From assembly GCA_021613535.1 (NCBI GenBank), contig CP075497.1, positions 4,216,001-4,280,000 on the forward strand: DNA of 64,000 nt, written 5' to 3'. Shown one piece after another: positions 1,845-39,800 of the stretch. Both the position numbers and the translations under genes were made by a program. This stretch comes from Adineta vaga. Its lineage: Eukaryota; Animalia; Rotifera. The notes beneath the pieces are model-generated. The model saw only the letters and a list, made by a program, of their open reading frames with translations, had not been told where the DNA came from and did not search any database. How positions within the stretch are numbered: the stretch's first letter is position 1; every line of letters begins with the position of its first letter.

Positions 1845-4800
1845 CTATGCATAATAATTCGGTGACACAAGAACATCAGCAAGAATTACAAGTTGATCTT
1901 CTGTGAACTTCTCACGATGTTCATGCCACGAATCATAATGAGTTCGACGAAATTCAGATAATGATTTCTTGATCGATTTCTACAAAACAAAACAAACAAA
2001 CATCACTTTCATTACCATCTTTCTTCACACTTACTTGAATAAGATCTGGATCATGTGAATGTTCACAAAGTAACATCAATGCTTCGGGTACATCATCAGG
2101 AATATCATATGGACTCGACAAAACAATTGCACAAAGACCAAGGACACCTAGCAAACATACATCATTCTCGCTCTCAACCATCCATCATGCATCACTCACC
2201 TCCATGTCGTTTGACAATGTTCTCGACTGATGTCACTTTTTTGCCATCGACCTTTGTGAAATAACTTGTCTTGCTCATCACACGAAAATGTTTCTATGAA
2301 TGAGATGAAGAATATCAATGCAAACGAGAGAGAGAGATGAATATACATACAAGATCATCTTTGCTGACTTGAATGAATCCACATTGGTAGAAACCAGAGA
2401 GTGTGACGGATGCAACAGTTCGAACTTCGAATTGTTCATCGAAGAGACATTTGAAGACGAGTTGTCTTAATCGTTGAGCATAAGGTCGAGTGTTGAAGAG
2501 ATTCGAAAAGATCATATTTTGAACGAACTCGATGGCAGCACGACGTGCATGCCATTTTGTACTGGAACAAACCTATGAGAGGAGAGAGAGAGAGAGAAGG
2601 AAATGATGTGGATGAGAGTGAACGAATGAAATTAAATTACATATTCGAGTTGTTCGATCAATGGTTCGATGAATGGTATTTGCAGATAAGTTACAGCTAA
2701 ATACATTCGACTAATAACTGTACTTTCACGAATAAAATCATCGTTAGCAATGATACTATCAATTTCACATAACTAAAAAATGAAAGAAATCGTTAAAATA
2801 AATATATTTTAAAATCATCTGTTTGTGTACATGAGGAAATAGACGAATAATAGAACTTTTTACTGGTTGAATATAACTAGAGAACATCAAGGTGTGTAGT
2901 TGAACAACTAAGTGAGAAATAAAATAGTGCTTTATCAATAGAAGAAAATATATGTTTCTACCTGTTTCAATATAATTCAAAGCTTTACGAGCTTCAGAAT
3001 CAATTTCAACACGTTCACCCGAGATATTTGCTAGAAAATGGGAATGCTGTTTATTTCAAAAAATTAAGAATTTATTTTTACCAAGCGGTGTTTTTTCATA
3101 TATTTGAATTGCTTGAGCAAATCGTTCTCGAATATTGTCAATGAATTGATTGACATTTGGATGACGAGTAGATTGACTATTGGGTAATTTTATATCGAAA
3201 CTGAGGGAAGTTGTTAAAACACTAACAGAAAAATCGAATTTATCATTTATTACATATAATTGATCCTTTTTTTACCTTGCGATACGTTCACGAATTGCTT
3301 TATATGGATGATCGAGATGATCTTTTGCATATTGATTAATTGCCCACCATACTTCAGGAATACGCCACTCAAAATTACTTAATTTTTGTACAAGAGTCCA
3401 TTGTGATGTAGCAAGAAATGTATTTCCTGTTGCATGTGTATTAATTAACGAACGAAGAAATTCAACTGGACGATACATTCGACGAGGATCTTCATCTTCC
3501 TAGGAAAAGAAAATCAAATGTTTGGCAGAAGAGTATTTATCTATCGACATACCATGCCAAATTTGAAACATGAACCCCAATGTGTTACAGTTTCTGCACT
3601 TAGATTTGTACAGACTTCATTAAGAAACGGTGTTAATCTTTTCCAAAGTTCATCCAACTACAAGAAATAATTCATTGAAATTTCAACAAAAATCTTTTCT
3701 TTCTCTTAAATACATACCATATCTAAAGTCCAATGTTTTGAACCACGAATCATTGCTCCAGTAATTTCAGCTGCTACTCGATGACTACCTTCATGTTTTT
3801 CTTTCGTTTTTTCATGGATTAATACATATAAATGTTCCATAAAAGTATCTATTAATACTAAACCAAAATTTCGGAAGAGACCCTATAGATAGAAAACAAA
3901 AGTAGATAAATCATCCTCATCCTTATCATTTACTTTGAACATTCGAAATCGATGAATATCAAAATTAATTTCTTCTTCTTCTTCGTCCAAAACCATTAAT
4001 TGAATGAATTTACTTATAAAATCTTTGTCAACAAATCTCTCATACAAGATTGATACATTTTCAGGCATTGTCTCCTTTGTATATCGTTCTCGTTTGTTCA
4101 TTGGATATCGAATTATCTTGGGCCACTTGTAATATCCATGATAACTTTTATCTAGGAAACAAGTTTCTTCCCATTCTTGTTGTGATGTAGGTGGCTTATA
4201 GTTATTGATAGTGAGCCAAAGATTATCATCACGATCACCAGGATGACATTCATTGATGTTAACAGGTCGATGAAGAATTTGATCGAGAGTTTTTTCGATA
4301 TAGATTCGAGGTGGTTTTTGTAGACGAGTAAATGCTGCAATACCTTTTTCTGAAATCTATACAAATCAATGAATTATTCATGGAAAGATCCTATGAATCT
4401 AATGAATATTAACCTTTCGTAATTCAACATTATCGTGAACAAGAAAATCGACAAATGTTCGAATACATGATGATGGAAGTGCGATAGGTCTTTGTAAAAG
4501 TAACCAAATAAACGCCATCGTCATTTCTTGTTGTCGCCATGTTCTTGAATTAAAAATGAAATTTAAAAAAGTATTGATAGAAAAGAATAATCAAATAACA
4601 TACAATACATTTCCATAAAATAATGAATTCAAGGTTTCCATCACATTATTATATGACTGAATATTTGCTTGATTTCTTTCTTCTCTCAATTGATCTCTAA
4701 ATGTTAACTCATTGGCTTCCAATGGTCGCCATAAAGAAATAGCAGCTTGTACTGATGCATCATTGATATCTTCTGTGACTGCTGGCGTATCAAATTGTTT

Positions 4801-7800
4801 TCCAATTTTTTCCATAATTCGATCAAGTAGATTTTGTGTACTAACTTTTGTAGCATGCACTGTACGTGCAAGTGATGGCCATAATTTTTCAAGTAATGTC
4901 CATGAATGTTTTGTTGGAATAAAAATTGAATCGTTTCCAAGAAGAATATAGAGACAACCTTTGATTTGATCATGATCAGCTTCGTCTGGACTATTCAATA
5001 ATTCAAGAATACGGTCAATTATTACTTGATATGAGAAAAGATAACGTCGTAGAATATGAAATAGATACACTTGTGCATTACGACGTACCTAGGAAGAAAG
5101 ATATGTTATGTGTAGGTAAAGTATGTCTCAACTTACTTCACTATAACGATGAATTGATAATTCGAACAATTTCAAAATGACTTGTTTATCTATTTCAGTT
5201 AAACTTTGATAGTTACTAATGGAAAATAACTATTGTAAAAATTAAAGAAAACATCAATGATCTTATCATTGTATGTAGAAAATGGCTGATTTACTTCAAG
5301 TTGAACATTTATACGTTTAATGATAATAAATCGTGGATGTTTTCGTTTGCCCGATAATTTATTTTTAAACAGTAATTTACTTGTTTCCAGATCTTTACAT
5401 AATTTTTCGACATAGTTTTCAAATACTCCAAAAAAGACCGATGTTATCGAATAAATCTAAACGAGCAGATAATATTTCCTCAAAAAACAATAGAACTAAT
5501 CTAGAATACCTTTAAAGCTGTTTTCATGGATGAAGCATCATCAGAATGATTTTCAACAAGAACATCTAAATGAATGAAAGTTATTCATATTTATCGTTTC
5601 TATCAACAGAAATTTACCAAGTAAATTTCCAATATCAGTTAACAGACGTATTCGCAAATTTTCTTTGAAATCTAAAATAGTCATGAAGATGTTTACGACT
5701 AGACAAGACTTTTTCTCTACTTAACAATAACTTACTAGGTTCTTTCGCATATAGTGTATATTTAGCACGTTTTCTTGTATCAAACGGTACAACTGATAGT
5801 ACTCTAAAAGGAGCAATATGTAACTGAAAAGTATTTGAATTATTACTTACAGATTGGTTACTTCTGGACTATCAATACGTGGTACCATGCGAAAACATCC
5901 TATAGCCATAAAACGAATCAATGTGAGTGATCTCAATCGTTCATCATTCGACATTTTCGAGCATTTTTCATTCAATAATTGTAATTCAGGATATATAAAT
6001 GTTTCAACAAATTCACATGCAAAATCAACTTCCTCTGCATTCGGAACATGAAATTGAACTTGAAGATCATCTAATTCAACATGTTGACCCCATGCCTACA
6101 ATAAAACAGTCAATTTCACAGCACTCTCATCTAAGAAACAAGATCAACATACGCGAATGGGAAGAAAATCAGTAAATGGTTCTTCGATGTTTTCAGTAGT
6201 TAAACGATATTCATTTGGATATACATAAGATAATGATTTCAGTAGATTTTTTGCAGCATTAGCAACAGTTTCATAAGATTCTTTATGAATAATACGAATG
6301 CATTGATGGAAAACGGAAAAAATCATTTGTTTATAAATGAGTAATGCATCACCACGAGCACGAACCAATTCAGAAAATAATGTTAAACACCAAGTTAGTT
6401 CTGTATCTCCTTTATGATCAGTTAATACTAATGAATCTGATTGAGTGATAATCTTGTTGATGCGTTCACATGTTTGTGGTAGAAGACATTTGAGTGTTTC
6501 TTCTGGTTTACCTTTGAGAATAGCTCGCACAAGTCCATTCAAAAGTTTACTTATTTTAGGTGAAAATGAAGATGCTGCTAGAAAGTTTGTTATCTTTTCT
6601 CGTATCATCTAAATCAAGAGTATTTCTTTTCTGATATGGAATCATTACAATTAATAAACATACTTGAAAGATTTTGTCACTACATTGTTGAACAATACCA
6701 GCTATCATGTTGGTCAATTCTTGACCAGCCTCTTGATCTTCCAAATTACTTTCATTTGTTAACATAACAGCATCCGACATTTCTGTCGAAAGAGTCTCGA
6801 TCATTCGAAATGTACGATTTAGAAATTCACTGATGAAGTCTTCAAATTTCGCTGTTGACAAACATACTTCTTTCTCAATCTATTATTAAAAACAACAGCT
6901 TGTATCACTCAGTTCAATCTTCATCTGATGGTAATCTTACTTCAGTGAGATCATTTCGAGTATGTACAGCTGATGAACAATCGACACATGTGACAAGCAT
7001 CAGAATAGCATTGAGAAACTGAAATGTGACTGCTGTCTTTTTGAAATCATTCGAATCGATGCCTGGTAGTACAGACATCAATAATGGTAGAACATAGGTT
7101 TGACCTTGTGAAAAACGAGGTGTTTGTCGAACGATCTCTCGTGTCATACCAGCAAGACAAGTAATAACAGCCGTGAAGCGATGTGGTTCAGTAATACTAT
7201 CGATCGATAAAAACAGTCTAAAAATTCATCAAATCAACCGATGATTAATCAATAATTGGAAAAAGAATAATAAATACGAACAATTCAACCAATGGTGGGA
7301 CAACTAATTCTGGCCGAAGTTGTGATAAACAATGACATGCTTTAGCTGCTTCTTCAAGATGTGCTTTATTAAACACAGAAATAAAGACACATTCTTTCAC
7401 GCAATTAACAAAATCAGTAATATCATCTTCTGTAAGTCGATAAGATTTTGGTGGATTAAAATGCCAAGCACAGTCAGGTTTTCGTTCTCTAGAATATATC
7501 CATGAATAGATCAAGAAATAAAATTTAACTTAACATACAAATGAACTCGATCGATAAATGCTTGTGATAGTTTTGAAAGAAAACTAACAAGATCTTGTTG
7601 AAAATCTCCTGTATTTGACGGATGATAAAATGTTTTCGTTGCAGTAAATAAATCTTTTAAGTATTGTAAACATGAACTTCCATTTCCCATCATTGCTACA
7701 AGCCATGTAGATATAATTGTTAACGAATAACTTTGTGATTGAGTAGATACTTGAACATTTGCAACAGGAAGCGAAAAATTTTTCAATATTCGTGTGAAAA

Positions 7801-8856
7801 TCTAAGAAAAAAAGCACAATATGTCATATGACGGTACGAAATTATATGTAATAAAAATACTTTCGGAAGCCAAGGTTCCCAATCAACATAACCAATATTA
7901 CACCAAGCAACAAAAGAGAAGATGTTGATTACATTCTAAAATGTTCATCTGTGAAATATCATATGAAAATGATTGAGTGAAAAACAAACTTGTTCCCAAT
8001 CAGGACTATTTGTTACACTTTCCCAAATACCTAGCAATTCCTGTAACCATAATCTAAATGCAGAATTTTAATGAACAAAATTTTATCTATTCATATCTGC
8101 ATACTTAAATCCTTGTTCATGTAAATTTGGTGGTAAATGAACAGGTAATAACAAATCTAAATAACACATTGCATCACTGAATGCTGAATCAAACGGACAT
8201 AACCATGGTCGAAATTCATCTAATATCTCTTGGGTTGCAGTTGCTGATAGATATGGTCGACAGCTGCGAACACAGTATAGAAGTGATTTTTCGATATCAC
8301 TAAATATAAAAATATCAATCGTACATTTCTAATTTCCAAATAGAAAATAATACAAACTTGGGCAAAGCTACTAATGAATATGATTCATCATTATTGAAAA
8401 GAATTAATTTAATCCATATATAAAGTAGATGCCAATCGATGATTAGATCATCTCTTGTTATCAAACGAGATTTCCTAGAATAAATATAAAAAGGAAATTG
8501 ATGAATAGAATATAGAAAAGAAATTCTACTAACGTCAAAAGTTCATCTATAATATCAAAACTTGTTTTTGCATTGGAATAATTCAAATCCGGAATTGTAA
8601 GAACACTTAGATATAAATGAATTAATTTCAAATGATCACTTTTTGTAAATGAAAAACCATAGAGTGAAATGAATTGTTGTAATTTTGATGACCATAATGG
8701 AAAGCCTGGTCGTAATTCACGTAATTGAATAATTCGAGAAAGATTTTCACATATTTCCTCAAATGATTCTAAACTTTGCTGTTTGATTGTATCATAAAAT
8801 GGCAAAAATGTATTGTAAACATTCGGTTTTTGAAGATTATCTTTATTAGAAGACAT
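1845..8856 (-). CDS. PSME4: Proteasome activator complex subunit 4 (PA200/Blm10), copy A, multi-exon
   Basis: N-term [56 protein letters not shown]-term ...[11 protein letters not shown] (TAG 1845-1847) carries the PA200/Blm10 YYA proteasome-docking tail. Confidence 0.95.
2576..2598. repeat. (GA)n microsatellite in a PSME4-A intron; longer allele at the equivalent PSME4-B site (about 10765-10792)
   Basis: Direct reading; flanks are identical in both copies. Confidence 0.8.
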
Positions 8857-10020: not shown

Positions 10021-13000
10021 TCAAGCATAGTAACTAGGCGATATGAGAACATCAGCAAGAATTGCGAGTTGATCTTCTGTGAACTTCTCACGATGTTCAT
10101 GCCACGAATCATAATGAGTTCGACGAAATTCAGATAATGATTTCTTGATCGATTTCTACAAAACAAAACAAACAAACATCACTTTCATTACCATCTTTCT
10201 TCACACTTACTTGAATAAGATCTGGATCATGTGAATGTTCACAAAGTAACATCAATGCTTCGGGTACATCATCAGGAATATCATATGGACTCGATAAAAC
10301 AATTGCACAAAGACCAAGGACACCTAGCAAACATACATCATTCTCGCTCTCAACCATCCATCATGCATCACTCACCTCCATGTCGTTTGACAATGTTCTC
10401 GACTGATGTCACTTTTTTGCCATCGACCTTTGTGAAATAACTTGTCTTGCTCATCACACGAAAATGTTTCTATGAATGAGATGAAGAATATCAATGAAAA
10501 TGAAAGAGAGAGAGAGAGATAAGAGATGAATATACATACAAGATCATCTTTGCTGACTTGAATGAATCCACATTGGTAGAAGCCAGAGAGTGTGACGGAT
10601 GCAACAGTTCGAACTTCGAATTGTTCATCGAAGAGACATTTGAAGACGAGTTGTCTTAATCGTTGAGCATAAGGTCGAGTGTTGAAGAGATTCGAAAAGA
10701 TCATATTTTGAACGAACTCGATGGCAGCACGACGTGCATGCCATTTTGTACTGGAACAAACCTATGAGAGGAGAGAGAGAGAGAGAGAGAGAAGGAAATG
10801 ATGTGGATGAGAGTGAACGAATGAAATTAAATTACATATTCGAGTTGTTCGATCAATGGTTCGATGAATGAAGTGTGTAAATAGGTCATGGCCACGCACA
10901 TACGACTAATTGTTAAATTTTTTCGAATAAAATCATCGTTAGCAACGATACTTTCTAATTCACAAAGCTGAAAAAAACGATAGGAGATAATAGAATCTTG
11001 AAGTTCATAGAAGAAAAGATCATACATAGGGGAATAATCGAATTACTCCAAGTTTCATTGGTTGCAAACACCTGGTAAAAAAATGTGTATGCATTTGTAT
11101 CACTAAAGAATAAGTATAAAATATCTTTCGTAATTAATAGAATCATTATATACTAACCTGTTTCAATGAAATTCAAAGCTTTACGAGCTTCGGGATCGAT
11201 CTCAACTACTTGTCCTGATACATTCGCTGCAATAGAAGGAATTAGATCAAATTTATTCTATCATAAAACACTTTACCCAAAGGTGTTCTTTCATAGATTT
11301 CAATTGCTTGTTTCAATCGTTCACGCATAGTATCGATGAATTCATTTGCATTCGGATGACGAATCGATTGACCATTGGGTAGTGTTACATCATAACTCAA
11401 GGATGTTGATAAGACACTAAATAAACAAATATATTCCAAACAAAAACATTGCCTTTTGTTGATTGCTTACTTGGCGATGCGTTCCCGAAAAGCTTTAAAT
11501 GGATGATCAATTAATTCACGAGCCTGTTCATGGATTGTACACCATAATTCTGGTACACGCCATTCAAAATTAGTTATTGTTTGCACAAGATACCACCGTG
11601 ATGTTTCAAGAAATGTATTTCCTACTGTATGTGTATTAATCAGTGAACGAAGAAATTCAATTGGACGATACATTCGACGGGGATCTTCATCTTCCTATAA
11701 ATCGAAGAAAGATTGTTCGATTTATGAATAAAAAAGTTAATAACATCTACTAACTATGCCTAATTTTAAACATGTACCCCAATGTGAAAGTGTTTCTGGA
11801 CTGAGATTTAAACACACTGCAGTCAAAAATGGTGTGAGTTTTTTCCAAAGTTCATCCAACTACAAGAAATAATTCATTTTTTTTATAAAATAAAATAAAA
11901 AAGAACCAACCATATCGACTGTCCAACATTTTGATCCACGAATCATACCAGCTACAATTTCTGCAGCTACTCGATGACTACCTTCATGTTTTTCTTTCGT
12001 TTTTTCATTGATCAATACATATAATCTTTCAATAAAATTGTCAACAAATGCTGGACCGAAATTACGAAAGAGTCCCTAAGAAAACATATTGATTATTATT
12101 GCATATGAAAGACAAATATATCTATCTCTACTTTGAACATATTAAAGCGTCTGGGATCAAAATTAATCTTTCCTTTTTCTTCATCCAAGACCATAAATTG
12201 AATGAATTTACTTATAAAATCTTTGTCAACAAATCTCTCATACAAGATTGATACATTTTCAGGCATTGTCTCTTTTGTATATCGTTCTCGTTTGTTCATT
12301 GGATATCGAATTATCTTGGGCCACTTGTAATATCCATGATAACTTTTATCTAGGAAACAAGTTTCTTCCCATTCTTGTTGTGATGTAGGTGGCTTATAGT
12401 TATTGATAGTGAGCCAAAGATTATCATCACGATCACCAGGCTGACATTCATTGATGTTAACAGGTCGATGAAGAATTTGATCGAGAGTTTTTTCGATATA
12501 GATTCGAGGTGGTTTTTGTAGACGAGTAAATGCTGCAATACCTTCTTCAGCAATCTAAATAAACGAGTATGATTAAAACATATAGATAAATAGTAAAAAG
12601 TGAACCTTTCGTAATTCAACATTATCGTGAACAAGAAAATCGACAAATGTTCGAATACATGATGATGGTATTGGTACTCGTTTTTGGAGAAGTAACCAAA
12701 TCAATGACATTGTTGTTTCTTGTTGTCGCCATGTTCTAAATAGTATTAATGCGAAAAGATAGTTGATTCACATATAAAAAGAACAGTTCCCGATGACTGA
12801 TAACGAATATTAACAACTTCAGAGAAGATAAACTTCACTTAATGAGCATTCGTTGTCAGTGCAAGAAGAAGCTTTGCTCATGTATTCGTAGCTTTACTCA
12901 TCAATGATTTTGAGGCAATCTGAATAATTCATTTTATATATACTATATCGTTACTACTTACATAGAATCGCCTCTGAGTAATCCATTCAATGTTTCCATG

Positions 13001-16000
13001 AGACTATTGTATGATCGAATATTTCCTAGATTTCTTTCTTCTCTCACTTTATTGCCAGCTATTAATTCATTCGCTTCTAATGGTTTCCACAAATCGATTG
13101 CTGCTTTTCTCGCTATTTCATTTGTATCTTCAATTAATGCTTGTGTATCAAATTGTTTTCCAATTGTTTCATTAATATGATCCATTAAACGTTGTGTTGT
13201 TGGTTTTTTTGCATGAGTTGTTCTTGCCATTGCTGGCCAAAGTTTTTCAATCATCGACCATGAATGTTTTGTTGGTAAAAAGAATGATTGATTTCCAAGA
13301 AGAATATAAAGACAACCTTTGATTTGATCATGATCAGCTTCACCTGGACTATTCAGTAATTCAATGATTCGATCGACAATGACTTGATAAGAAAATAAAT
13401 AACGATTAAGAACAGAAAATAAATAACCCTGTGCATCACGTCGAACCTTGATAATTAAAGACAAAATAATAAACAAATTCGTTGACAGAGAAACACTTAC
13501 TTCACCGTATCGATTTATTGATAATTCGAATAATTTAAGAATAACTTGTCTATCAATTTCAGTTAATGATTGAAAATTACTTAGAGAAAATTGCTAAAAA
13601 TAATCGAAAATGTCTTTCTTAATGAATCAATTTCACTAAATTGTTCTTTACTTCGCATTGTAATGTCATTCGTTCAATCATTAAGAAACGTGGATATTGT
13701 CGTTCACCATATAGTTTATTAATAAAAGAATTTTTTGCTGCTTCAAAATGTTTTTGTAACTTTTCTGCATCATGTTTAAACACACCATAATAGATTGATG
13801 ATAAGGAATAGATCTATTTTCCAAATGTAAGAAATTTTGTTATAATATATGAAAAGAAATAGAAACATACTTTCAATGCAGTTTTCATCGAGGATGCATC
13901 ATCCGAATGATTTTCAACCAGAATATCTAGACGGTACAAGAATGAATATGTCTAGTTATATTTCTTCTATCGTTCGAAACTTACCAAGTAAATTTCCAAT
14001 ATCAGTTAAAAGACGCATTCTCAAGTTTTCTTTGAATTCTGAAGAAAAATACAATCTATAGAGAAGAGCTAATTCTTTTCTTTAATCGATATACTTGGTT
14101 CTTTTGCATAGATTGAATATTGTGCTTGATATTTAGAACCATATGGAGCAACGGATGGAACACTGAAAAATCCATTGAATTTATAGATCAAACAAATGAA
14201 TTATCAATAATTTCTTACAGATTTTCTATTTCTTTACTATCAATACGTGGTACCATTCTTAAACATCCAATTGTCATATAGTGAACAAGTGTAAGTGATC
14301 TTAATCGTTCATCATTCGACATTTTGGAGCATTTTTCATTCAATAATTGTAATTCAGGATATATAAATGTTTCAACAAATTCACATGCAAAATCAACTTC
14401 CTCTGCATTCGGAACATGAAATTGAACTTGTAGATCATCAAATTCAACATGTTGACCCCATGCCTACAATAAAACAGTCAATTTCACAGCACTCTCATCT
14501 AAGAAACAAGATCAACATACGCGAATGGGAAGAAAATCAGTAAATGGTTCTTCGATGTTTTCGGTAGTTAAACGATATTCAGTTGGATATACGTAAGATA
14601 ATGATTTCAGTAGATTTTTTGCAGCATTTGCTACAGCTTCATGAGTTTCTTTATGAATAATACGAACACATCGATGAAATACAGAAACAATCATTGATTT
14701 GTAAATGGACAAAGTATCACCACGAGCACGAACCAATTCAGAAAATAATGTTAAACACCAAGTTAGTTCTGTATCTCCTTTATGATCAGTTAATATTGTT
14801 GTTTCTGAATGACTCATGATTTTTTCAATACGTTCACACGTTTGTGGTAGAAGACATTTGAGTGTTTCTTCTGGTTTACCTTTGAGAATAGCTCGTACAA
14901 GGCCAGTAACAAGTTTACCAACTTTTGGAGTGAAAAATGAACCAGCAAGAAAATTTGAGATCTTTTCTCGTACCATCTAAATAAATATTTTATAATATAA
15001 TGAATTTGATCGATTTTTATTGACTAATTTATTTACTTGAAAGATTTTGTCACTACATTGTTGAACAATACCAAACATCATCGATGTTAATGCTAATTCG
15101 GTCACATGATCTTCGACATTAATCTTTGATATAACAACAACAGCATCCGACATTTCTGTAGATAATGTATCAATCAGTTGAAAAGTTCGATTTAGAAATT
15201 CACTGATGAAATCTTCAAATTTCGCTGTTGACAAACATACTTCTTTCTCAATCTATTATTAAAAACAACAGTTTGTATCACTCAGTTCAATTTTCATCTG
15301 ATGGTAATCTTACTTCAGTGAGATCATTTCGAGTATGTACAGCTGATGAACAATCGACACATGTGACAAGCATCAGAATAGCATTGAGAAACTGAAATGT
15401 GACTGCTGTCTTTTTGAAATCATTCGAATCGATGCCTGGTAGTACAGACATCAATAATGGTAGAACATAGGTTTGACCTTGTGAAAAATGAGGTGTTTGT
15501 CGAACGATTTGACGAGCTATACTCGCTAAACATGTCATAATAGACGTAAATCGATGTGGTTCACTGATACTATCAATTGATGAAAAGAGTCTAAATTAAA
15601 TTCAAAATAAATGATATTAAGTGTTTAAGTGAAAGATTAATAACAAACTTTTCAACGATAGGTGGAACAATTAATTCAGGCCGAAGCATTGACAAATATT
15701 GGCAAGCTTTCGCAGCTTCTTTCAATTGAGTTTTTGTAAAAATTGCGATAAATGCACATTCTTTCACACAATTAACAAAATCTGTTATATTTTGTTCTGT
15801 CAATCGATAAGATTCAGGTGGTGTAAAATACCAGATTGGATTTGCTTTACGTTCTCTAAATAAAGCAATACAATTAATTTATCGAAAGATTCTTCTTTGC
15901 TTACAAATGAACCCGATCGACCAATGCTTGTGATAATTTCGAAAGAAAACTAATTAACTCTTGTTGAAATTTTCCCGTATTTGATGGATGATAAAAGCTT

Positions 16001-17267
16001 TTGATAGCTGTAAATAAATCTTGTAAATATTGTAAGCATGTACTACCATTTCCTAACATAGCTACAATCCATGTTGTAACACTTGACATCGAATAACGAT
16101 ATTGTTGAAGTGAAACTTGAAGTTTACCAACTGGTAGAGTAAAACTTTTCAATATTCGAGTAAAAATCTATTTAAAAATTGAATAGTTTATAAACAAAAA
16201 AAGTTATGATTTAATTGAAATACTCGTGGTAGCCAAGGTTCCCAATCAATATAACCAATATTACACCATGCTAACAAGGAGAACAAATTGATCATATTCT
16301 AGAAAGAATCATATTTTGCATCCGAAACATGATCAGTCAAGTTATATTTACTAGTTCCCATGATGGATTACTGTAAATACTTTCCCAAATACCCATGAAT
16401 TCAGTTAACCATAATCTATAATCAAAATAAATATGAAATTTTCGTAAATAAACTTTGTCATTTCTTACTTATATCCTTGATCATGTAATTCTGGTGGTAA
16501 ATGAACTGGTAAGAATATTTCAAATATTCTCATTGTATCCGAAAAAGCTGAATCAAATGGACATAAATATGGTCGAAATTCATCGAGAATTTCTTGTGTT
16601 GATGTTGCTGAAAAATAGGGTCGAGATCCTCGTATACAATAGAATAAAGAATTTTCAATATCACTTGAGAAAAAAGAAGAACATGAAACAGATTAAGATG
16701 ATGAAAAAGTAAACAAAACGAACTTCGGTAATGAAACTAATGAGTATGGTTCGTCATGATTGTGAAGAATGATTTTTGCCCATTTGTATAATTCACGCCA
16801 ATCGATAACTATATCAGCACGTGTGATCAGACGTGTTTTTCTAGACAAAATAGAATATTATTATGAAAATTTTAGTTTAAAACATATGAAAGCAAACCTC
16901 ATCAAATCATAGAGCATATCAAAGCACGTTTTGACATGCGAAAAATCCAAATCATTTATGGAAAGAACTGATAAATACAAATGAATTAATTTAATATGAT
17001 CTGTTTTCGTAAAATTGAGACCATAAAGAGCAATAAAACGTTGTAGTTTCGATGACCAATGTGAAAATCCAGGTCTTAATTCTCGTAATTGAATAATACG
17101 TGACAAATTCTCTTTGATTTCTTCGAATAAATCATAACCTGTTGTTTAACTGAATCATAAAAAGGTAAATATTTATTGAAAATATTTGGTTTTTGAAGAT
17201 TATCCTCAGATGTATCCATTTCGTCGACATCTGTACTGCGTTCACTTTCAATCTGTTGATCGTCCAT
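10021..17267 (-). CDS. PSME4: Proteasome activator complex subunit 4 (PA200/Blm10), copy B, multi-exon, with an apparent 1-nt deletion frameshift near 17140
   Basis: Same exon series as copy A; C-term ...[11 protein letters not shown] (TGA 10021-10023). Exon 1 reads KQQ and must then change frame to give [24 protein letters not shown] (copy A: [27 protein letters not shown]). Confidence 0.9.
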
Positions 17268-17947
17268 CTAAATAAAATATGAGAATAAATTTGTCAATTA
17301 TTCAGTCAATTCAATTTCATCAAGGTTTACAATACGAAGAGATTTTTTTGTTTTCTTTTTGTATTATGTAAGAGAAAAATGATTATTTGCCAGTATTAAT
17401 CGAATAACAAATAAGGATAAAGAAAATTTGAACTAACTAATACAAAAAAAAACTAAACAAATGAAGGACGATAAAAATTTATGCATTATCATCAAAAGAT
17501 AAATTTATATTTTGAACGTGGTTGATCAAAAAGGATCCATTGACTCAGCAATATCTGGCCTCTTCTGTTCTATTCAAATACATCATCGTGCGACATCTAT
17601 TTCTTCAGAAAGATTTTTCTTCTACGTCAAGTACGTGAGAAGACAGAAGAAGTTTAGGATAGAAGCGGTTTCGATCAATGGTATGGTTTTAAGACCTTTA
17701 TTTATTTTCCAGAATTGAAATACAATCATATGTGAATATGGATTTTTATCAATGATGTAAGTAGCAAAGCTTAGATCGTAATTGAATGCTTATACAATGT
17801 AGTAAAATAGCGTATCCATGCTATCGGACATTCAGATATATCGAATTTTTCAAGATTTATAATTAGACAAAGAGAATTTATAGTGTATCAATCTGTGAAA
17901 CTTAGCATTCTATTTAAAAATAAACATATTTAATTGAAACTTCTAAA

Positions 17948-18107
17948 TGGCCTGCGCGAACGCAAGCCAGCGTCAAGAAATTAGCGGATCTCTTCTATTC
18001 ATGTGAATAGAAAGCGTACGTCAGCCGTAGACCGATGTGCAATGGCCAGACCTTCACACGGCGGATCGAAGTTCTTGATCCTCGAAACCGCATCCGAAAG
18101 TAAGTAT
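17948..18107 (-). ncRNA. U1: U1 snRNA variant with altered 5' end (AUACUUACUUU)
   Basis: The minus strand begins AUACUUACUUU. Helix CGGAU/AUCCG; SL1 loop GAUCAAGAAC; SL2 loop AUUGCACAUC; SL3 UUCUAUUC-ACAU-GAAUAGAA; Sm-like AAUUUCUUG; SL4 UGGCUUGCG-UUCG-CGCAGGCCA. Length 160 nt. Confidence 0.9.
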
Positions 18108-18355
18108 GATTATTATTCTATTTTCTTCACCTAATATATTAACTTCAAATGCAAAACAAAATCGGTGAAAATTCTGTAGTCATCTGATAAACAAATGACA
18201 AGAAATCAGCGACAAATGTTTGAAAGAACGAACGAAAGAAGACTATGAATCACATGGAAGAACAGAGGAAAAAAGGAAACTGATAGCAAACATTTACTGC
18301 GAAATTTGTGCATAGTTACTTATTATATAATAATGAGTGAAGCGAGTTCATAAGC
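18108..18355. promoter_or_regulatory. 248-bp bidirectional snRNA promoter region with PSE-like elements
   Basis: On its own strand each U1 gene has a T-rich motif ending in TGCA at about -47 to -43, then an ATATA tract, then GTGAAG at about -23 to -14. The minus copy has TCACCG, resembling the start of the vertebrate PSE. Confidence 0.5.
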
Positions 18356-18516
18356 ATACTTACCTGCCACAGGAACTTCCTTGAACAAGAAGAAGGAAGC
18401 CCCTGGCGGAGGCCCTGTCATTGCACTCCGACAGCGCTAAAGCCAGCGAAAGGTTCACATAGAACCTTCTCGAGTGGATCATTTTTCCCAACGGATCGAG
18501 CGTTCGCGCTTGATCC
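18356..18516 (+). ncRNA. U1: U1 snRNA with canonical 5' end (AUACUUACCUG) and divergent body
   Basis: AUACUUACCUG; helix CCAC/GUGG; SL1 CUUCCUU-GAACAAGAAG-AAGGAAG; SL2 CUGUC-AUUGCACUCC-GACAG (U1A site); SL3 AAGGUUC-ACAUA-GAACCUU; Sm-like AUUUUUC; SL4 GGAUCGAGCG-UUCG-CGCUUGAUCC. Length 161 nt. Confidence 0.92.
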
Positions 18517-18957
18517 TATCCTTTCAAATCCATGATAAAATTAATAGAGATTTTATATATTCGTTTCCCTTTCTCATTTTCAAATATAATATACAATCAC
18601 TAATGCAAAATACACATTTATATTACATAAAAAAATGACAAAATCTGATAACTTTCTTCCAAACTATATAAAATTCATGCAGAATATATATATTTTTCAA
18701 AATCAATAAAACAAAGATAAATATTTTGCAAACAGAAATAACAAATATAAGAAGATAAAGAGATTGAATCTTTTCATTTCTAAGCGATAGTATGTAACAG
18801 GATCAACCATATCATAATCACTAGTATTTTATTGTAGTTTTTTTTACAATGTATTCAAATATGCGATATCGTATATGAAAGATAAGTAAAACAAGATCGA
18901 TTGTTTTTAATTCGTATCGAATGAAATATTCAGTATATGGTTGGTTGATTGATTGAA

Positions 18958-36845: not shown

Positions 36846-39800
36846 TTAACTGGTAGTTAAAATTGGCGTTGCACTAATTTGTTGTTGCGGTGGTATTGCT
36901 TTACTTTTAGCATCATCTGGATCACGAATTAGTGCAAGAATTTTGTCTAATTTAACACTTTCTGCCTCTGGTCCTTCGGTGACATCTTGACCCTTTTTAA
37001 TTTTAGGTTTTTTACGTAAATTTGGCGAAAGTTTTAATGACATTACATTGCCACGATCATCACCGGCAAGTAGAACAGGATGCTTTTGATTAAATGATAT
37101 ATGTGTTAATTTTGTACGTTTTTTTTGAACAACAACTTGTTCAGCTAATGCATCATATTTATTAATATTTAAATCAAAGACAAAAATTTTTCCATCAGCA
37201 GTACATGCAGCAAATACAGTCGAAGAATAAGGTGCCCATGCAACATCACCAACAGCACTACCCAAATCGTAAACAAATAATGGAACTCTAGAAGTAAAAC
37301 AATTGAAACGAAAGATATGTAGAAGATTGATTTTACTTATAATCAATATCCCAGATTTTAACTGTCCAATCTGCTGAACAACTGATGAAAATCTTCGGAT
37401 GAAAACAATTCCAACGTACAGCATAAACAGCCATATGATGAGCATCGAATGTATCTAAGAATTGATTATTGTATGATTTGGAACATTTATGAATTTTTCC
37501 TTCTTCTGTTCCGACAATAAATAAATAATCTTGTTGTTTATTAAAATCAAAACATGTTCCACAACCTTAAATATTCCGAAAGAAATCTTTTCAAAAATAG
37601 AAATAGAACAATTGAGATCTCTCTTACCGAGTGATGCTAATGGAAGAGCTTCTTCTGTTTCTACCGATGATTTATCTAATTTCAATTGTACAATATCATT
37701 GTACATTAAATCACTCTAAAGAATATTGAAGCGGAAATTTTTCTTCTGAGAATTTATTTGAAATAAAACTTACTTTCACGATCGTCCAACAAACAACACG
37801 ACCATCCGATGAAACAGAATAGAAATTGAAATTTCCATCCAAATCATCTTTTTGCCAACGAACTTGCCAAACTGGATCTGTATGTTTACCATTTCGAGCT
37901 GTACTTTGACATTTTGGTCGTTTATGATCATCAGCTATATTATAAACAGCAACAGAACCATCATAAAAACCTAAACAAATTTCTCTTTTGGTCAAGAAAA
38001 CGTTGAATTTCACGAAAAAATCTTTTTCTTACCGCAACAAAGCAAATTCGAATGTGTATGATGAAAATCTAAACACATCACACCAATTTCTGTTTGATAA
38101 ACATATTCCGGAAAGCTTGGATTTTTTAATGAATAAATTAATAACATTCCATGACTTTGTTTAAGAAAATCATCTAGAACATACTTCATTCAATTCAAAT
38201 CTAACAATTATTTCATCATACATGAACCAAAAGCAACAGCAAACATATCGGAATATTGATAGTTCCATGCCAAATATGTACATGCCAATTTTTTTGTTAA
38301 TTCATAGTGAAAAGACCATAATGGTAATAGACTACCTTCTTGTTCACGATATTCATCAGCTGCATCTTCCCAATATTTAAAGTCTAATCAACGACAAAAC
38401 CGTTGAAAAACCTATCTTCTCATTCGAAAGAAAAAAAACAAACCTTGAGCGATATCATCGAATGTATTCTGATTAATCATTCGTTCGATGATTTTCAATG
38501 AAATACTTGCAGCTTTTGAACGAGCAAATTTAGCCATATCATCTCCCTTTTTGAATAGAAAAAAGTATTATATTTTGTTTAAAATCATTGAATTCATTCT
38601 TATCTTACAGATAGATCAGTTGTAACAAATTTCTTCTTCTTTTCTTCATCTTTTTTCGTTAAAGTTTTCTTATTTTCTTTCTCTTTTGTTTTTTGCTAAA
38701 AAGACAAATTTCGTTTAATTATTCGCAAGATGATCGATCAAAATTACTTGTAGATCATAATCTTCATTATAAGCATCGAAAATTGCCCATTGAGATACAT
38801 TATCGGAAAACACAGCACGTGGTGTTTGTTCGACAAATGTTTCACGATCCTATGAGAAGAATTTAGTAAAATATGATTGACAACTTATGCAAATACTCGG
38901 CATGGATGATTGTATGTTTGTGAAGCACGTTCACTGAAATTGAATTGATTCGTTAATTTTTTTGTTTTAGTTGTAGTTGCACTTGGTTTTACAGATCTAT
39001 CTTCGTCTTCTTCTTCAGCATCTTTTGATGTTACTTCCTATAAGAAAATTCGAATAAGAAATATATGTACGTCATGAAATTGAAATGTCAAATACTTCAT
39101 CAAGTTCAGTCGTTGCAACTGTTGTTGGAATCTCCTCATCTTCCTCTTCTTCATCATCTTCGATTAAATATTCTAGAAAAAGAAGACGTTTAGTTTTGTT
39201 TTTCAGAATGTTTTTATCATTGACCTCCGCCATCTCGTACGAGTTGTCGTCGTCCTTCATCAGAATCACGAAGAATAAGATTTCCATCAAGTTGAAAATG
39301 AATTGCTAATTGATCAACATGTGGAATCGGTTTGTACATTCGATCCTATATTGATATAATACTAAATTCTTTCTCACTGTTAGCTCTCGAAATGTCATAT
39401 ACTTTGTAACTATATCGAACAATATTTTCTGCAGCTTGAGGATTACGTGTTGTTAATATTCGTGTATGTTCTTCGTTTAATTCCTAAGAAAAGAAGATCG
39501 ATTTTTTTCTATGAACAAGTCATTCGTCCTACCGCTTCTGTTAATTTTAGTTGATCATCAGGACGAACAGGTCGAAGTGCCTAACAGAAATCATTTTATA
39601 AAGGCTAATAAAAAAAACTAAAATTTCATACATCTTCTGAAAGGTCAGGCATATTCCCAAAATCTTGTTCATCATCCTAGAAAAAATTTTTATTTTCAAT
39701 TCGATTGTTTTTCTGAATCTCTTTCATCATACTCGAAAATTTCCCATCATTGAATTGCGAGATAATTGACTAGTACGTCGTTGTAATGGAACAGATCCAT

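Follow-up and report, generated by a model that had tools for sequence, protein, structure and literature searches.

A conserved head-to-head pair of U1 snRNA genes in the bdelloid rotifer Adineta vaga, one of them with a recoded donor-reading 5' end

To our knowledge, the donor-reading segment of U1 small nuclear RNA (snRNA), comprising its first 10–11 nucleotides (nt), is almost invariant in eukaryotes. Within this segment nt 9–11 pair with exon positions −1 to −3, and in laboratory U1 suppressors changes in the donor-reading nucleotides shift specificity. Developmental U1 isoforms occur in Xenopus, sea urchin and mouse (U1b), and developmentally switched isoforms have reportedly been found in Drosophila, but so far as we are aware all of these keep the donor-reading 5' end. 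Here we analyse 64,000 nt of the genome of the bdelloid rotifer Adineta vaga (GenBank assembly GCA_021613535.1, contig CP075497.1, positions 4,216,001–4,280,000; hereafter the window), which encodes a pair of U1 genes, one canonical and the other (the variant) altered at nt 9 and 11. An earlier note on this DNA, made from its sequence alone, had suggested that the two RNAs divide the 5' splice sites of this genome between them. We consider it fairly probable that the locus is a conserved divergent pair of two functional U1 genes of old paralogous classes, and that the variant acts as an additional reader of 5' splice sites, overlapping with canonical U1 in its range but preferring donors with A at −1.

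The main known examples of natural U1 paralogues in which the reading end is changed are the human variant U1 (vU1) genes, a heterogeneous and barely expressed set. These are numerous, occupy loci of their own, amount to <0.001% of U1 and are mostly without measurable splicing activity (PMC10870369); some are altered at the end that reads the 5' splice site, and a role in broadening or regulating 5' splice-site choice has been suggested for them (PMC3561869, PMC8457000, PMC10870369). The rotifer variant, known here from genes, is likewise a U1 paralogue altered at this end but, unlike the human genes, forms a class with a uniform 5' end, as many genes as the canonical class, a conserved promoter of its own and compensatory changes across several taxa. 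Because it forms its own lineage beside the rotifer canonical genes in a phylogenetic tree (described below), it is independent of human vU1 by descent; it would work like a vU1 yet lie outside the vU1 group, the likeness covering paralogy and the changes. In Fritillaria borealis ~95% of introns are non-GT/AG and yet the two versions of U1 have identical 5' ends, and reasons for a possible constraint on divergent U1 duplicates have been discussed for this species (PMC13326754, 2026). What is new in the rotifer is a recoded reading end that is fixed in a whole gene class, under purifying selection, across several taxa.

The mechanism that we assume for the variant is that of engineered and suppressor U1 RNAs of the Zhuang and Weiner type, in which changes at nt 3–11 shift donor recognition by base pairing; those are laboratory constructs, whereas the rotifer variant would be their natural, germline-encoded and conserved counterpart. 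As with the developmental isoforms there are several U1 genes that differ in promoter and stems and are possibly expressed differentially, but here the 5' end itself differs. U11 snRNA likewise works beside U1 within one cell and recognises another kind of 5' splice site by base pairing. It belongs to a separate family, however, with its own partners and sharply distinct introns, whereas all structural tests identify the variant as a U1 and the donors do not make up a separate class. If the variant is expressed, it would constitute a natural experiment on the co-evolution of 5' splice-site specificity and the U1 that reads it, and one that is directly testable, A. vaga being in culture and having a chromosome-level genome. 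We found no report in the literature on rotifer U1 variants or on the donor composition of A. vaga.

Membership of the U1 family was assessed with the Rfam covariance model RF00003, which has a gathering score of 69.5 bits. Both window genes match the model over positions 1–166, well above this score (Table 1) and with E-values of 1e-19 to 1e-26, far beyond chance, bearing out the earlier description of two full-length U1 folds on opposite strands. Their 5' ends face each other across the spacer. The two copies are only 52% identical, and all helices of the model align in both: helix H and stem-loops (SL) 1–4 are kept, as are CAUUGCAC in the SL2 loop (invariant among all U1 copies compared), the UUCACAU loop of SL3 and GCGUUCGCGC in SL4, so that the stems do indeed differ in sequence while remaining paired around shared loop motifs, as the earlier note had it. 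The SL1 loop reads GAUCAAGAA in the variant and GAACAAGAA in the canonical copy, of the U1-70K motif type AUCA.GAA. Motifs for putative binding of U1-70K (SL1 loop) and U1A (SL2 loop, AUUGCAC) are recognisable in both genes. At minimum free energy the variant folds into the four-way junction of U1, leaving nt 1–11 unpaired. Both copies have Sm-like sites (AAUUUCUUG in the variant, AUUUUUCC in the canonical copy) that are conserved in relatives and that deviate from AAUUUGUGG. Both window genes resemble described canonical U1 in their length, in the four-way junction and SL4, in the loop motifs of SL1 and SL2, and in having a putative Sm site and an snRNA-type promoter.

The difference lies at the 5' end. 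The plus-strand copy has the universal AUACUUACCUG, complementary to CAG:GUAAGUAU (the colon marks the exon–intron boundary), and the minus-strand copy, which begins AUACUUACUUU, lacks this complementarity. As previously described, nt 1–8 and 10 are as in the canonical RNA and nt 9 and 11 are changed (C9U and G11U); nt 7–11 read ACUUU in place of ACCUG, and the same is true of two further genes in the genome. A changed 5' end does not by itself exclude the variant from the U1 family: model score, folding, loop motifs and promoter type all place both genes among the U1 RNAs, and of these features and the 5' end, the variant departs from canonical U1 in the 5' end alone.

An Infernal search with RF00003 over the whole assembly (100.8 Mb in six contigs) identified six U1 genes (79–109 bits), three with ACCUG and three with ACUUU. 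Only those in the window are paired, the other four being solitary. The canonical genes on contigs 3 and 6 (C3 and C6b) are 90% identical, with flanks that align at 73.5%, and the variant genes on contigs 2 and 5 (C2 and C5) are 86% identical; both couples apparently stem from an old genome duplication. The A. vaga AV20 haploid assembly consists of six scaffolds, chromosomes 1–3 corresponding to 4–6 (PMC8494291), and the C3/C6b and C2/C5 couples fit this correspondence if contig numbers are chromosome numbers.

To look beyond this genome, we scanned public metagenome contigs with the pattern ATACTTACTT...CATTGCAC...GCGTTCGCGC. This gave 29 loci, 23 of which begin ATACTTACTTTC and lie on AT-rich contigs (GC 0.26–0.36). 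Ten of these ACUUU genes are of the window type (helix H CGGAU) and 13 of the C2/C5 type (helix H CCUCU), both variant subfamilies of A. vaga having counterparts in other taxa. At all ten window-type loci, which fall into at least three sequence groups, a canonical U1 of the window type is found on the opposite strand, 5'-to-5', at a distance of 272–285 bp. Conservation of the variant class and of the head-to-head linkage, for which the earlier note had looked to a covariance search, is therefore seen in both respects. When the ten syntenic loci are compared to the window, the body of the variant gene is 90–95% identical, with its first 24 nt invariant, and that of the canonical gene 94–98%, against 48–60% for the spacer and 70–78% for the syntenic flanks. 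Given these values, and since the A. vaga genome has no second pair of its own, the metagenome contigs come from other, well-diverged taxa.

The pattern of change within the RNAs is that of maintained structure. Among the six genomic U1 genes, 23 of 37 predicted pairs hold their pairing through changes on both sides. In the 18 distinct genes of the variant class, 611 of 612 stem cells (99.8%) form standard pairs, compared to 37–48% in slid controls; compensatory change is seen in 15 of 34 pairs, compared to 1–3 in the controls, and the first 12 nt show no variation at all. These results show strong purifying selection on both window genes and speak against decayed copies, a point on which the earlier note is upheld, and they leave little room for a dead variant gene. 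In a maximum-likelihood tree from which nt 1–11 were excluded (only 154 columns, with some long branches), all 18 distinct ACUUU genes lie on one side of a branch with support 96/93. The ACUUU end consequently arose once and is old, having been present before the two subfamilies and the sampled taxa diverged. An origin of the pair by recent local inverted duplication was considered and is ruled out by the 52% identity of the copies and by the separate grouping of the two classes in this tree.

Two further sets of U1 sequences were encountered in public data. In run X1, which carries a different species label, a canonical U1 aligns to window positions 18352–18538 with six differences in 187 nt and a downstream flank unlike that of the window; it appears to represent a further relative with a canonical gene of the window type. 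In addition, U1 genes with C9U only, starting AUACUUACUUGG and scoring 111–151 bits, are present on six metagenome contigs of eukaryotes with GC contents of 0.39–0.44 (L032:2063–2224, L035:3328–3490 with identical copies in L038, L049 and L055, and L042:930–1092); no open reading frame (ORF) of at least 150 amino acids was found in L038 or L049. These genes show that U9 also occurs outside the rotifer lineage.

To relate the two 5' ends to the donors that they might read, introns were predicted on 264 kb of one chromosome (the window plus C6:4280001–4480000), a small sample from a single chromosome arm that includes a tandem duplication. Junctions of long open segments were combined with models of donor positions +3 to +8, acceptor and length trained by expectation-maximisation (EM), positions −3 to −1 being kept out. 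This yielded 239 predicted introns with a median length of 57 nt, against 24 in reversed sequence, implying that ~10% are false. A plain ORF-continuity filter and two EM runs with wide length limits had given nonsense output and were dropped as intron finders. Predicted intron interiors are 54% identical in syntenic relatives and flanking exons 78%, which supports the predictions. The two donors given as examples in the earlier note are both recovered as belonging to minus-strand introns (GAA:GTAAGT, 5089–5136, and AAA:GTAAGT, 37716–37773).

The donor consensus of the predicted introns is (A/C)A(A/G):GTAA(G/A)T. At −1 the frequencies are A 0.40, G 0.34, T 0.17 and C 0.09; A stands at 0.54 at −2, and −3 has A at 0.35 and C at 0.26. 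The commonest exon end is AAA:GT (31 of 239). Compared to GT decoys within the flanking exons, A and G are enriched at −1 (1.59-fold and 1.86-fold) and C and T halved. The proposed match of the UUU end to AAA donors is borne out as to fit: the variant end fits A at −1 and −3, A is the leading base at −1 and AAA:GT the leading end. A is not enriched at −3. Donor composition at −3 to −1, which had been put forward as a genome-wide check, has A about as often as G at −1 in these 264 kb and reveals no discrete classes.

Duplexes between the U1 5' ends and the predicted donors were estimated in register with nearest-neighbour energies. Mean values over all donors are nearly equal for the canonical and variant ends, at −3.83 and −3.84 kcal/mol. 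At A(−1) donors the canonical end reaches −2.3 and the variant end −4.7 kcal/mol; at G(−1) donors the values are −6.5 and −3.6 kcal/mol. With a margin of over 0.5 kcal/mol, 110 donors pair better with the variant end and 98 with the canonical one, about half for each. At or below −5 kcal/mol there are 88 donors if only the canonical end is considered and 113 if either end may pair. A soft division of labour by the base at −1 is plausible.

The 248-bp spacer was aligned with those of the ten syntenic loci (11 spacers in all). Each window gene has what is predicted to be a complete and distinct snRNA-type core promoter, made up of a proximal sequence element (PSE)-like box and a TATA box, of the kinds used by snRNA genes transcribed by RNA polymerase II (Pol II). 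On the canonical side the consensus is TACTG(C/T)G(C/A)AATTT(T)TG from −61, TATATAA at −32 and AAGC just 5' of +1; on the variant side it is TTCACCG(A/G)TTTTGTTTTGC from −61 with a TATA-like ATATATT near −32. The two box types recur by class at the other four genomic U1 genes and in relatives of the C2/C5 type. As each gene has its own boxes, and these are of different flavours (U5-like for the canonical gene and U4-like for the variant), the sequence does not bear out the single bidirectional promoter that the earlier note had envisaged. It is possible that the two genes share an upstream element such as TGAATCA, a TGA(A/G)TCA-like element being found ~85–110 nt upstream of both U1 classes and of U4 genes. 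Together with the boxes of other small RNA genes (Table 1), these elements amount to an initial overview of the promoter types of rotifer snRNA genes.

The resemblance of the variant's TTCACCG box to those of U6, RNase MRP and RNase P genes raised the prospect of transcription by RNA polymerase III. This was rejected: a near-identical box is found in three Pol II U4 genes, and in no relative is there a 3' T-run. No conserved 3' box was found in the alignments downstream of either the variant or the canonical genes, where the sequence is A-rich and unconserved.

Transcript evidence comes from assembled contigs of public sequencing runs that match the window locus with a likeness of at least 90%; contigs show presence, not absence. 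In two true RNA libraries, one plant-associated (X4) and the other a soil metatranscriptome (X5), contigs cover the canonical gene at 18370–18498, with summed word depths of ~3000 and 56, respectively, from which we conclude that the canonical copy is expressed. The contigs from both libraries begin at 18370 (nt 15 of the RNA), straight after adaptor sequence, the first 14 nt being absent; this shared start may be a reverse-transcription stop or an effect of assembly.

On the reading that we favour, each gene would be driven by its own snRNA-type core promoter, with a PSE-like box at about −61 and a TATA box at about −32, and the canonical gene would make ordinary U1. The variant would keep whatever a U1 small nuclear ribonucleoprotein (snRNP) needs, namely helix H, SL1, SL2, SL3, the Sm-like site and SL4, while its single-stranded 5' end would be altered only where exon positions −1 and −3 are faced. 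Such an end would bind donors with A at −1 (and −3) better and would still accept G(−1) through G–U wobble. In an AT-rich genome with short introns, where A is as frequent as G at −1, it would thereby widen the set of well-recognised donors without serving a separate class of introns. A change in donor reading is indicated by the fact that the substitutions fall at exon-facing nucleotides, beside fully conserved nt 1–8, and are invariant in 18 diverged genes. The analysis establishes the identity of the genes, their two classes, their conservation and compensatory evolution, the separate promoters and the composition of the donors. Production of the variant RNA, its assembly into an snRNP and a role in splicing with the preference given here are what we infer from this. 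A stronger version of this reading, to which we give only tentative credence, is that bdelloids of the Adineta lineage possess a true dual-U1 spliceosome, in which the anciently duplicated and recoded U1 would form an snRNP of high abundance, required by the many introns that follow an exon ending in A. If so, donor drift in an AT-rich genome would have been met by co-evolution of the reader RNA itself, a route that even animals with extremely non-canonical splicing have been considered not to take.

A number of observations weigh against the variant as a second reader of bulk donors. The intron set is predicted rather than derived from transcripts. At −3, C (which fits G11) is enriched 1.36-fold over the exonic decoys, compared to 1.06-fold for A (which fits U11). 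Donors with A(−1) have more intronic matches than those with G(−1), 3.74 versus 3.37 (p = 0.016), and as many as donors with a pyrimidine at −1; this is the pattern to be expected if A(−1) is usually unpaired and bulk recognition is by C9. The Sm-like site of the variant is off the usual consensus. Its expression is putative. No contig of X4 or X5 was seen on the spacer or on the window variant gene at the likeness of at least 90%, and seven runs on record as RNA each hold no more than 0.18 of the stretch's words, about one U1's worth. In the variant's favour, its gene lies under one contig of 192 nt (17893–18084) from run X2, which has the same species label and whose nature as RNA is guessed. 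This contig is without the first 23 nt of the variant and includes ~53 nt beyond its 3' end; it is accordingly no mature snRNA but perhaps a precursor transcript, or DNA. The window variant is far rarer than its canonical neighbour in the communities sampled by X4 and X5, and since these two libraries contain the canonical copy alone, at high depth, the idea that the pair is co-expressed is not supported.

Some of these observations lend weight to what we see as the main rival, although we think it rather unlikely: that the variant is functional but specialised or rare, either as an isoform of a particular stage, tissue or stress (eggs, embryos, recovery from desiccation) or in a task outside splicing, bulk splicing being left to canonical U1. 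Such a task could be the suppression of premature cleavage and polyadenylation at A-rich sites resembling 5' splice sites. The U4-like and U5-like promoter flavours suggest separate control, the two environmental libraries rich in canonical U1 show no variant, the intronic compensation at A(−1) donors resembles that of sites read by C9, and developmentally switched isoforms have the precedents described above. As far as is known, though, those isoforms keep their 5' ends, whereas the change in the variant sits at donor-reading positions and is invariant in 18 distinct genes, which points to a function in pairing. Decidedly improbable, in our view, is a strict two-U1 system, in which AAA:GU-type and CAG:GU-type introns are each tied to their own U1 and the two RNAs are co-expressed from one bidirectional promoter. 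Equal gene numbers, the linkage of one gene of each class at all ten related loci and a preferred U1 that flips with the −1 base in the duplex estimates would all suit it, but the core promoters are separate, the other four genomic U1 genes are solitary and only the canonical copy is seen in the two RNA libraries. Moreover, the bases at −3 and −1 of the exon show no association in chi-square tests (p = 0.07 and 0.40), C(−3) being found more often with A(−1) than with G(−1). With C enriched at −3 and A(−1) donors compensated like pyrimidine(−1) donors, the donors form a continuum and not two classes, and the earlier proposal that two U1s divide 5' splice-site classes between them is not supported on this point. 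That the variant genes are non-functional relics or neutral paralogues persisting beside functional U1 genes strikes us as very improbable indeed. Here the lack of any mature variant RNA in the runs examined and the unusual Sm-like site are joined by the example of human vU1, which is mostly at <0.001% of U1 and of which few members act in splicing (PMC10870369). Against this stand a gene body far better conserved than the adjoining spacer, near-complete pairing of the stems with 15 compensatory pairs, conserved promoter boxes and the retention of three loci, all with counterparts in other taxa and two apparently dating back to the old genome duplication.

Table 1. U1 genes of the window and their candidate promoter elements, with the remaining genomic U1 genes and the upstream boxes of small RNA genes (positions without a contig name refer to the window; those in brackets are relative to the start of the gene)
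Feature	Position or genes	Strand	Details
Canonical U1 snRNA gene	18356..18518	+	5' AUACUUACCUG; helix H CCAC/GUGG; RF00003 109.2 bits, full length
Variant U1 snRNA gene	17946..18107	−	5' AUACUUACUUU (C9U, G11U); helix H CGGAU/AUCCG; Sm-like site AAUUUCUUG; RF00003 84.8 bits, full length
Divergent spacer, 248 bp	18108..18355		Two separate core promoters inside; invariant blocks in otherwise 48–60% identical sequence
Variant PSE-like box TTTTCACCGATTTTGTTTTGCA	18150..18171 (−64 to −43)	−	One or two variable positions in 11 aligned spacers; common to C2/C5 variants and three U4 genes
Variant TATA-like box	18132..18141 (about −34 to −25)	−	Conserved ATATATT block in spacer alignment
Canonical PSE-like box TTTACTGCGAAATTTGTGCA (TACTG at −61)	18293..18312	+	Conserved in 11/11 spacers; common to C3/C6b canonical U1 and three U5 genes
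Canonical TATATAA box	18324..18330 (−32)	+	Invariant in 11/11 spacers
TGAATCA palindrome-like upstream element	18246..18252 (about −105 from canonical start)		Possible shared enhancer, function inferred
AGCGACAA block	18208..18215 (about −100 from variant start)		Nearly invariant in spacer alignment
ACCUG U1 genes	Window plus-strand copy; C3:11047669; C6:4758571 (C6b)		Genome-wide Infernal search
ACUUU U1 genes	Window minus-strand copy; C2:2628065; C5:14662872		Genome-wide Infernal search
Upstream box CTACTRTGCAATTTTTGCG	Canonical U1 and three U5 genes (L066–L068)		Also TATA box
Upstream box TTCACCGATTTTGTTYTGCA / TTCACCGATTTTGTTTTGCA	Variant U1 and three U4 genes (L076–L078)		Also TATA box
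Upstream box ATTCACCGTTYTTTTTCT plus TATATAA	U6 (L069–L075), RNase MRP (L079), RNase P (L080)		
Upstream motif AAATGTGYNNNGAC, no TATA	U2 genes (L056–L065)		At least 19 copies, clustered

Other features of the neighbourhood deserve brief mention. Some 100 nt downstream of its variant U1, one related lineage has a tRNA gene (L036:1840–1910 and L045:5605–5675); no tRNA reaches the Rfam gathering score in the window. Just to the left of the U1 pair the window contains a diverged tandem duplication of a multi-exon gene region (2032–8841 and 10208–17426). Both copies align to metagenome contig L036 at ~70–75% identity, and several predicted donors recur in both.

The survey of small RNA genes also brought to light two U6-like genes, L073 (G000:C1:15557882–15557985) and L074 (G000:C3:18913715–18913815), with GAUAGAGAGA in place of the U6 sequence GAUACAGAGA, such that the ACAGAGA box, which in U6 contacts the 5' end of the intron, is altered. 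Both have TATATAA upstream, and the TCACCG box is missing in L073. These may be U6 variants or pseudogenes.

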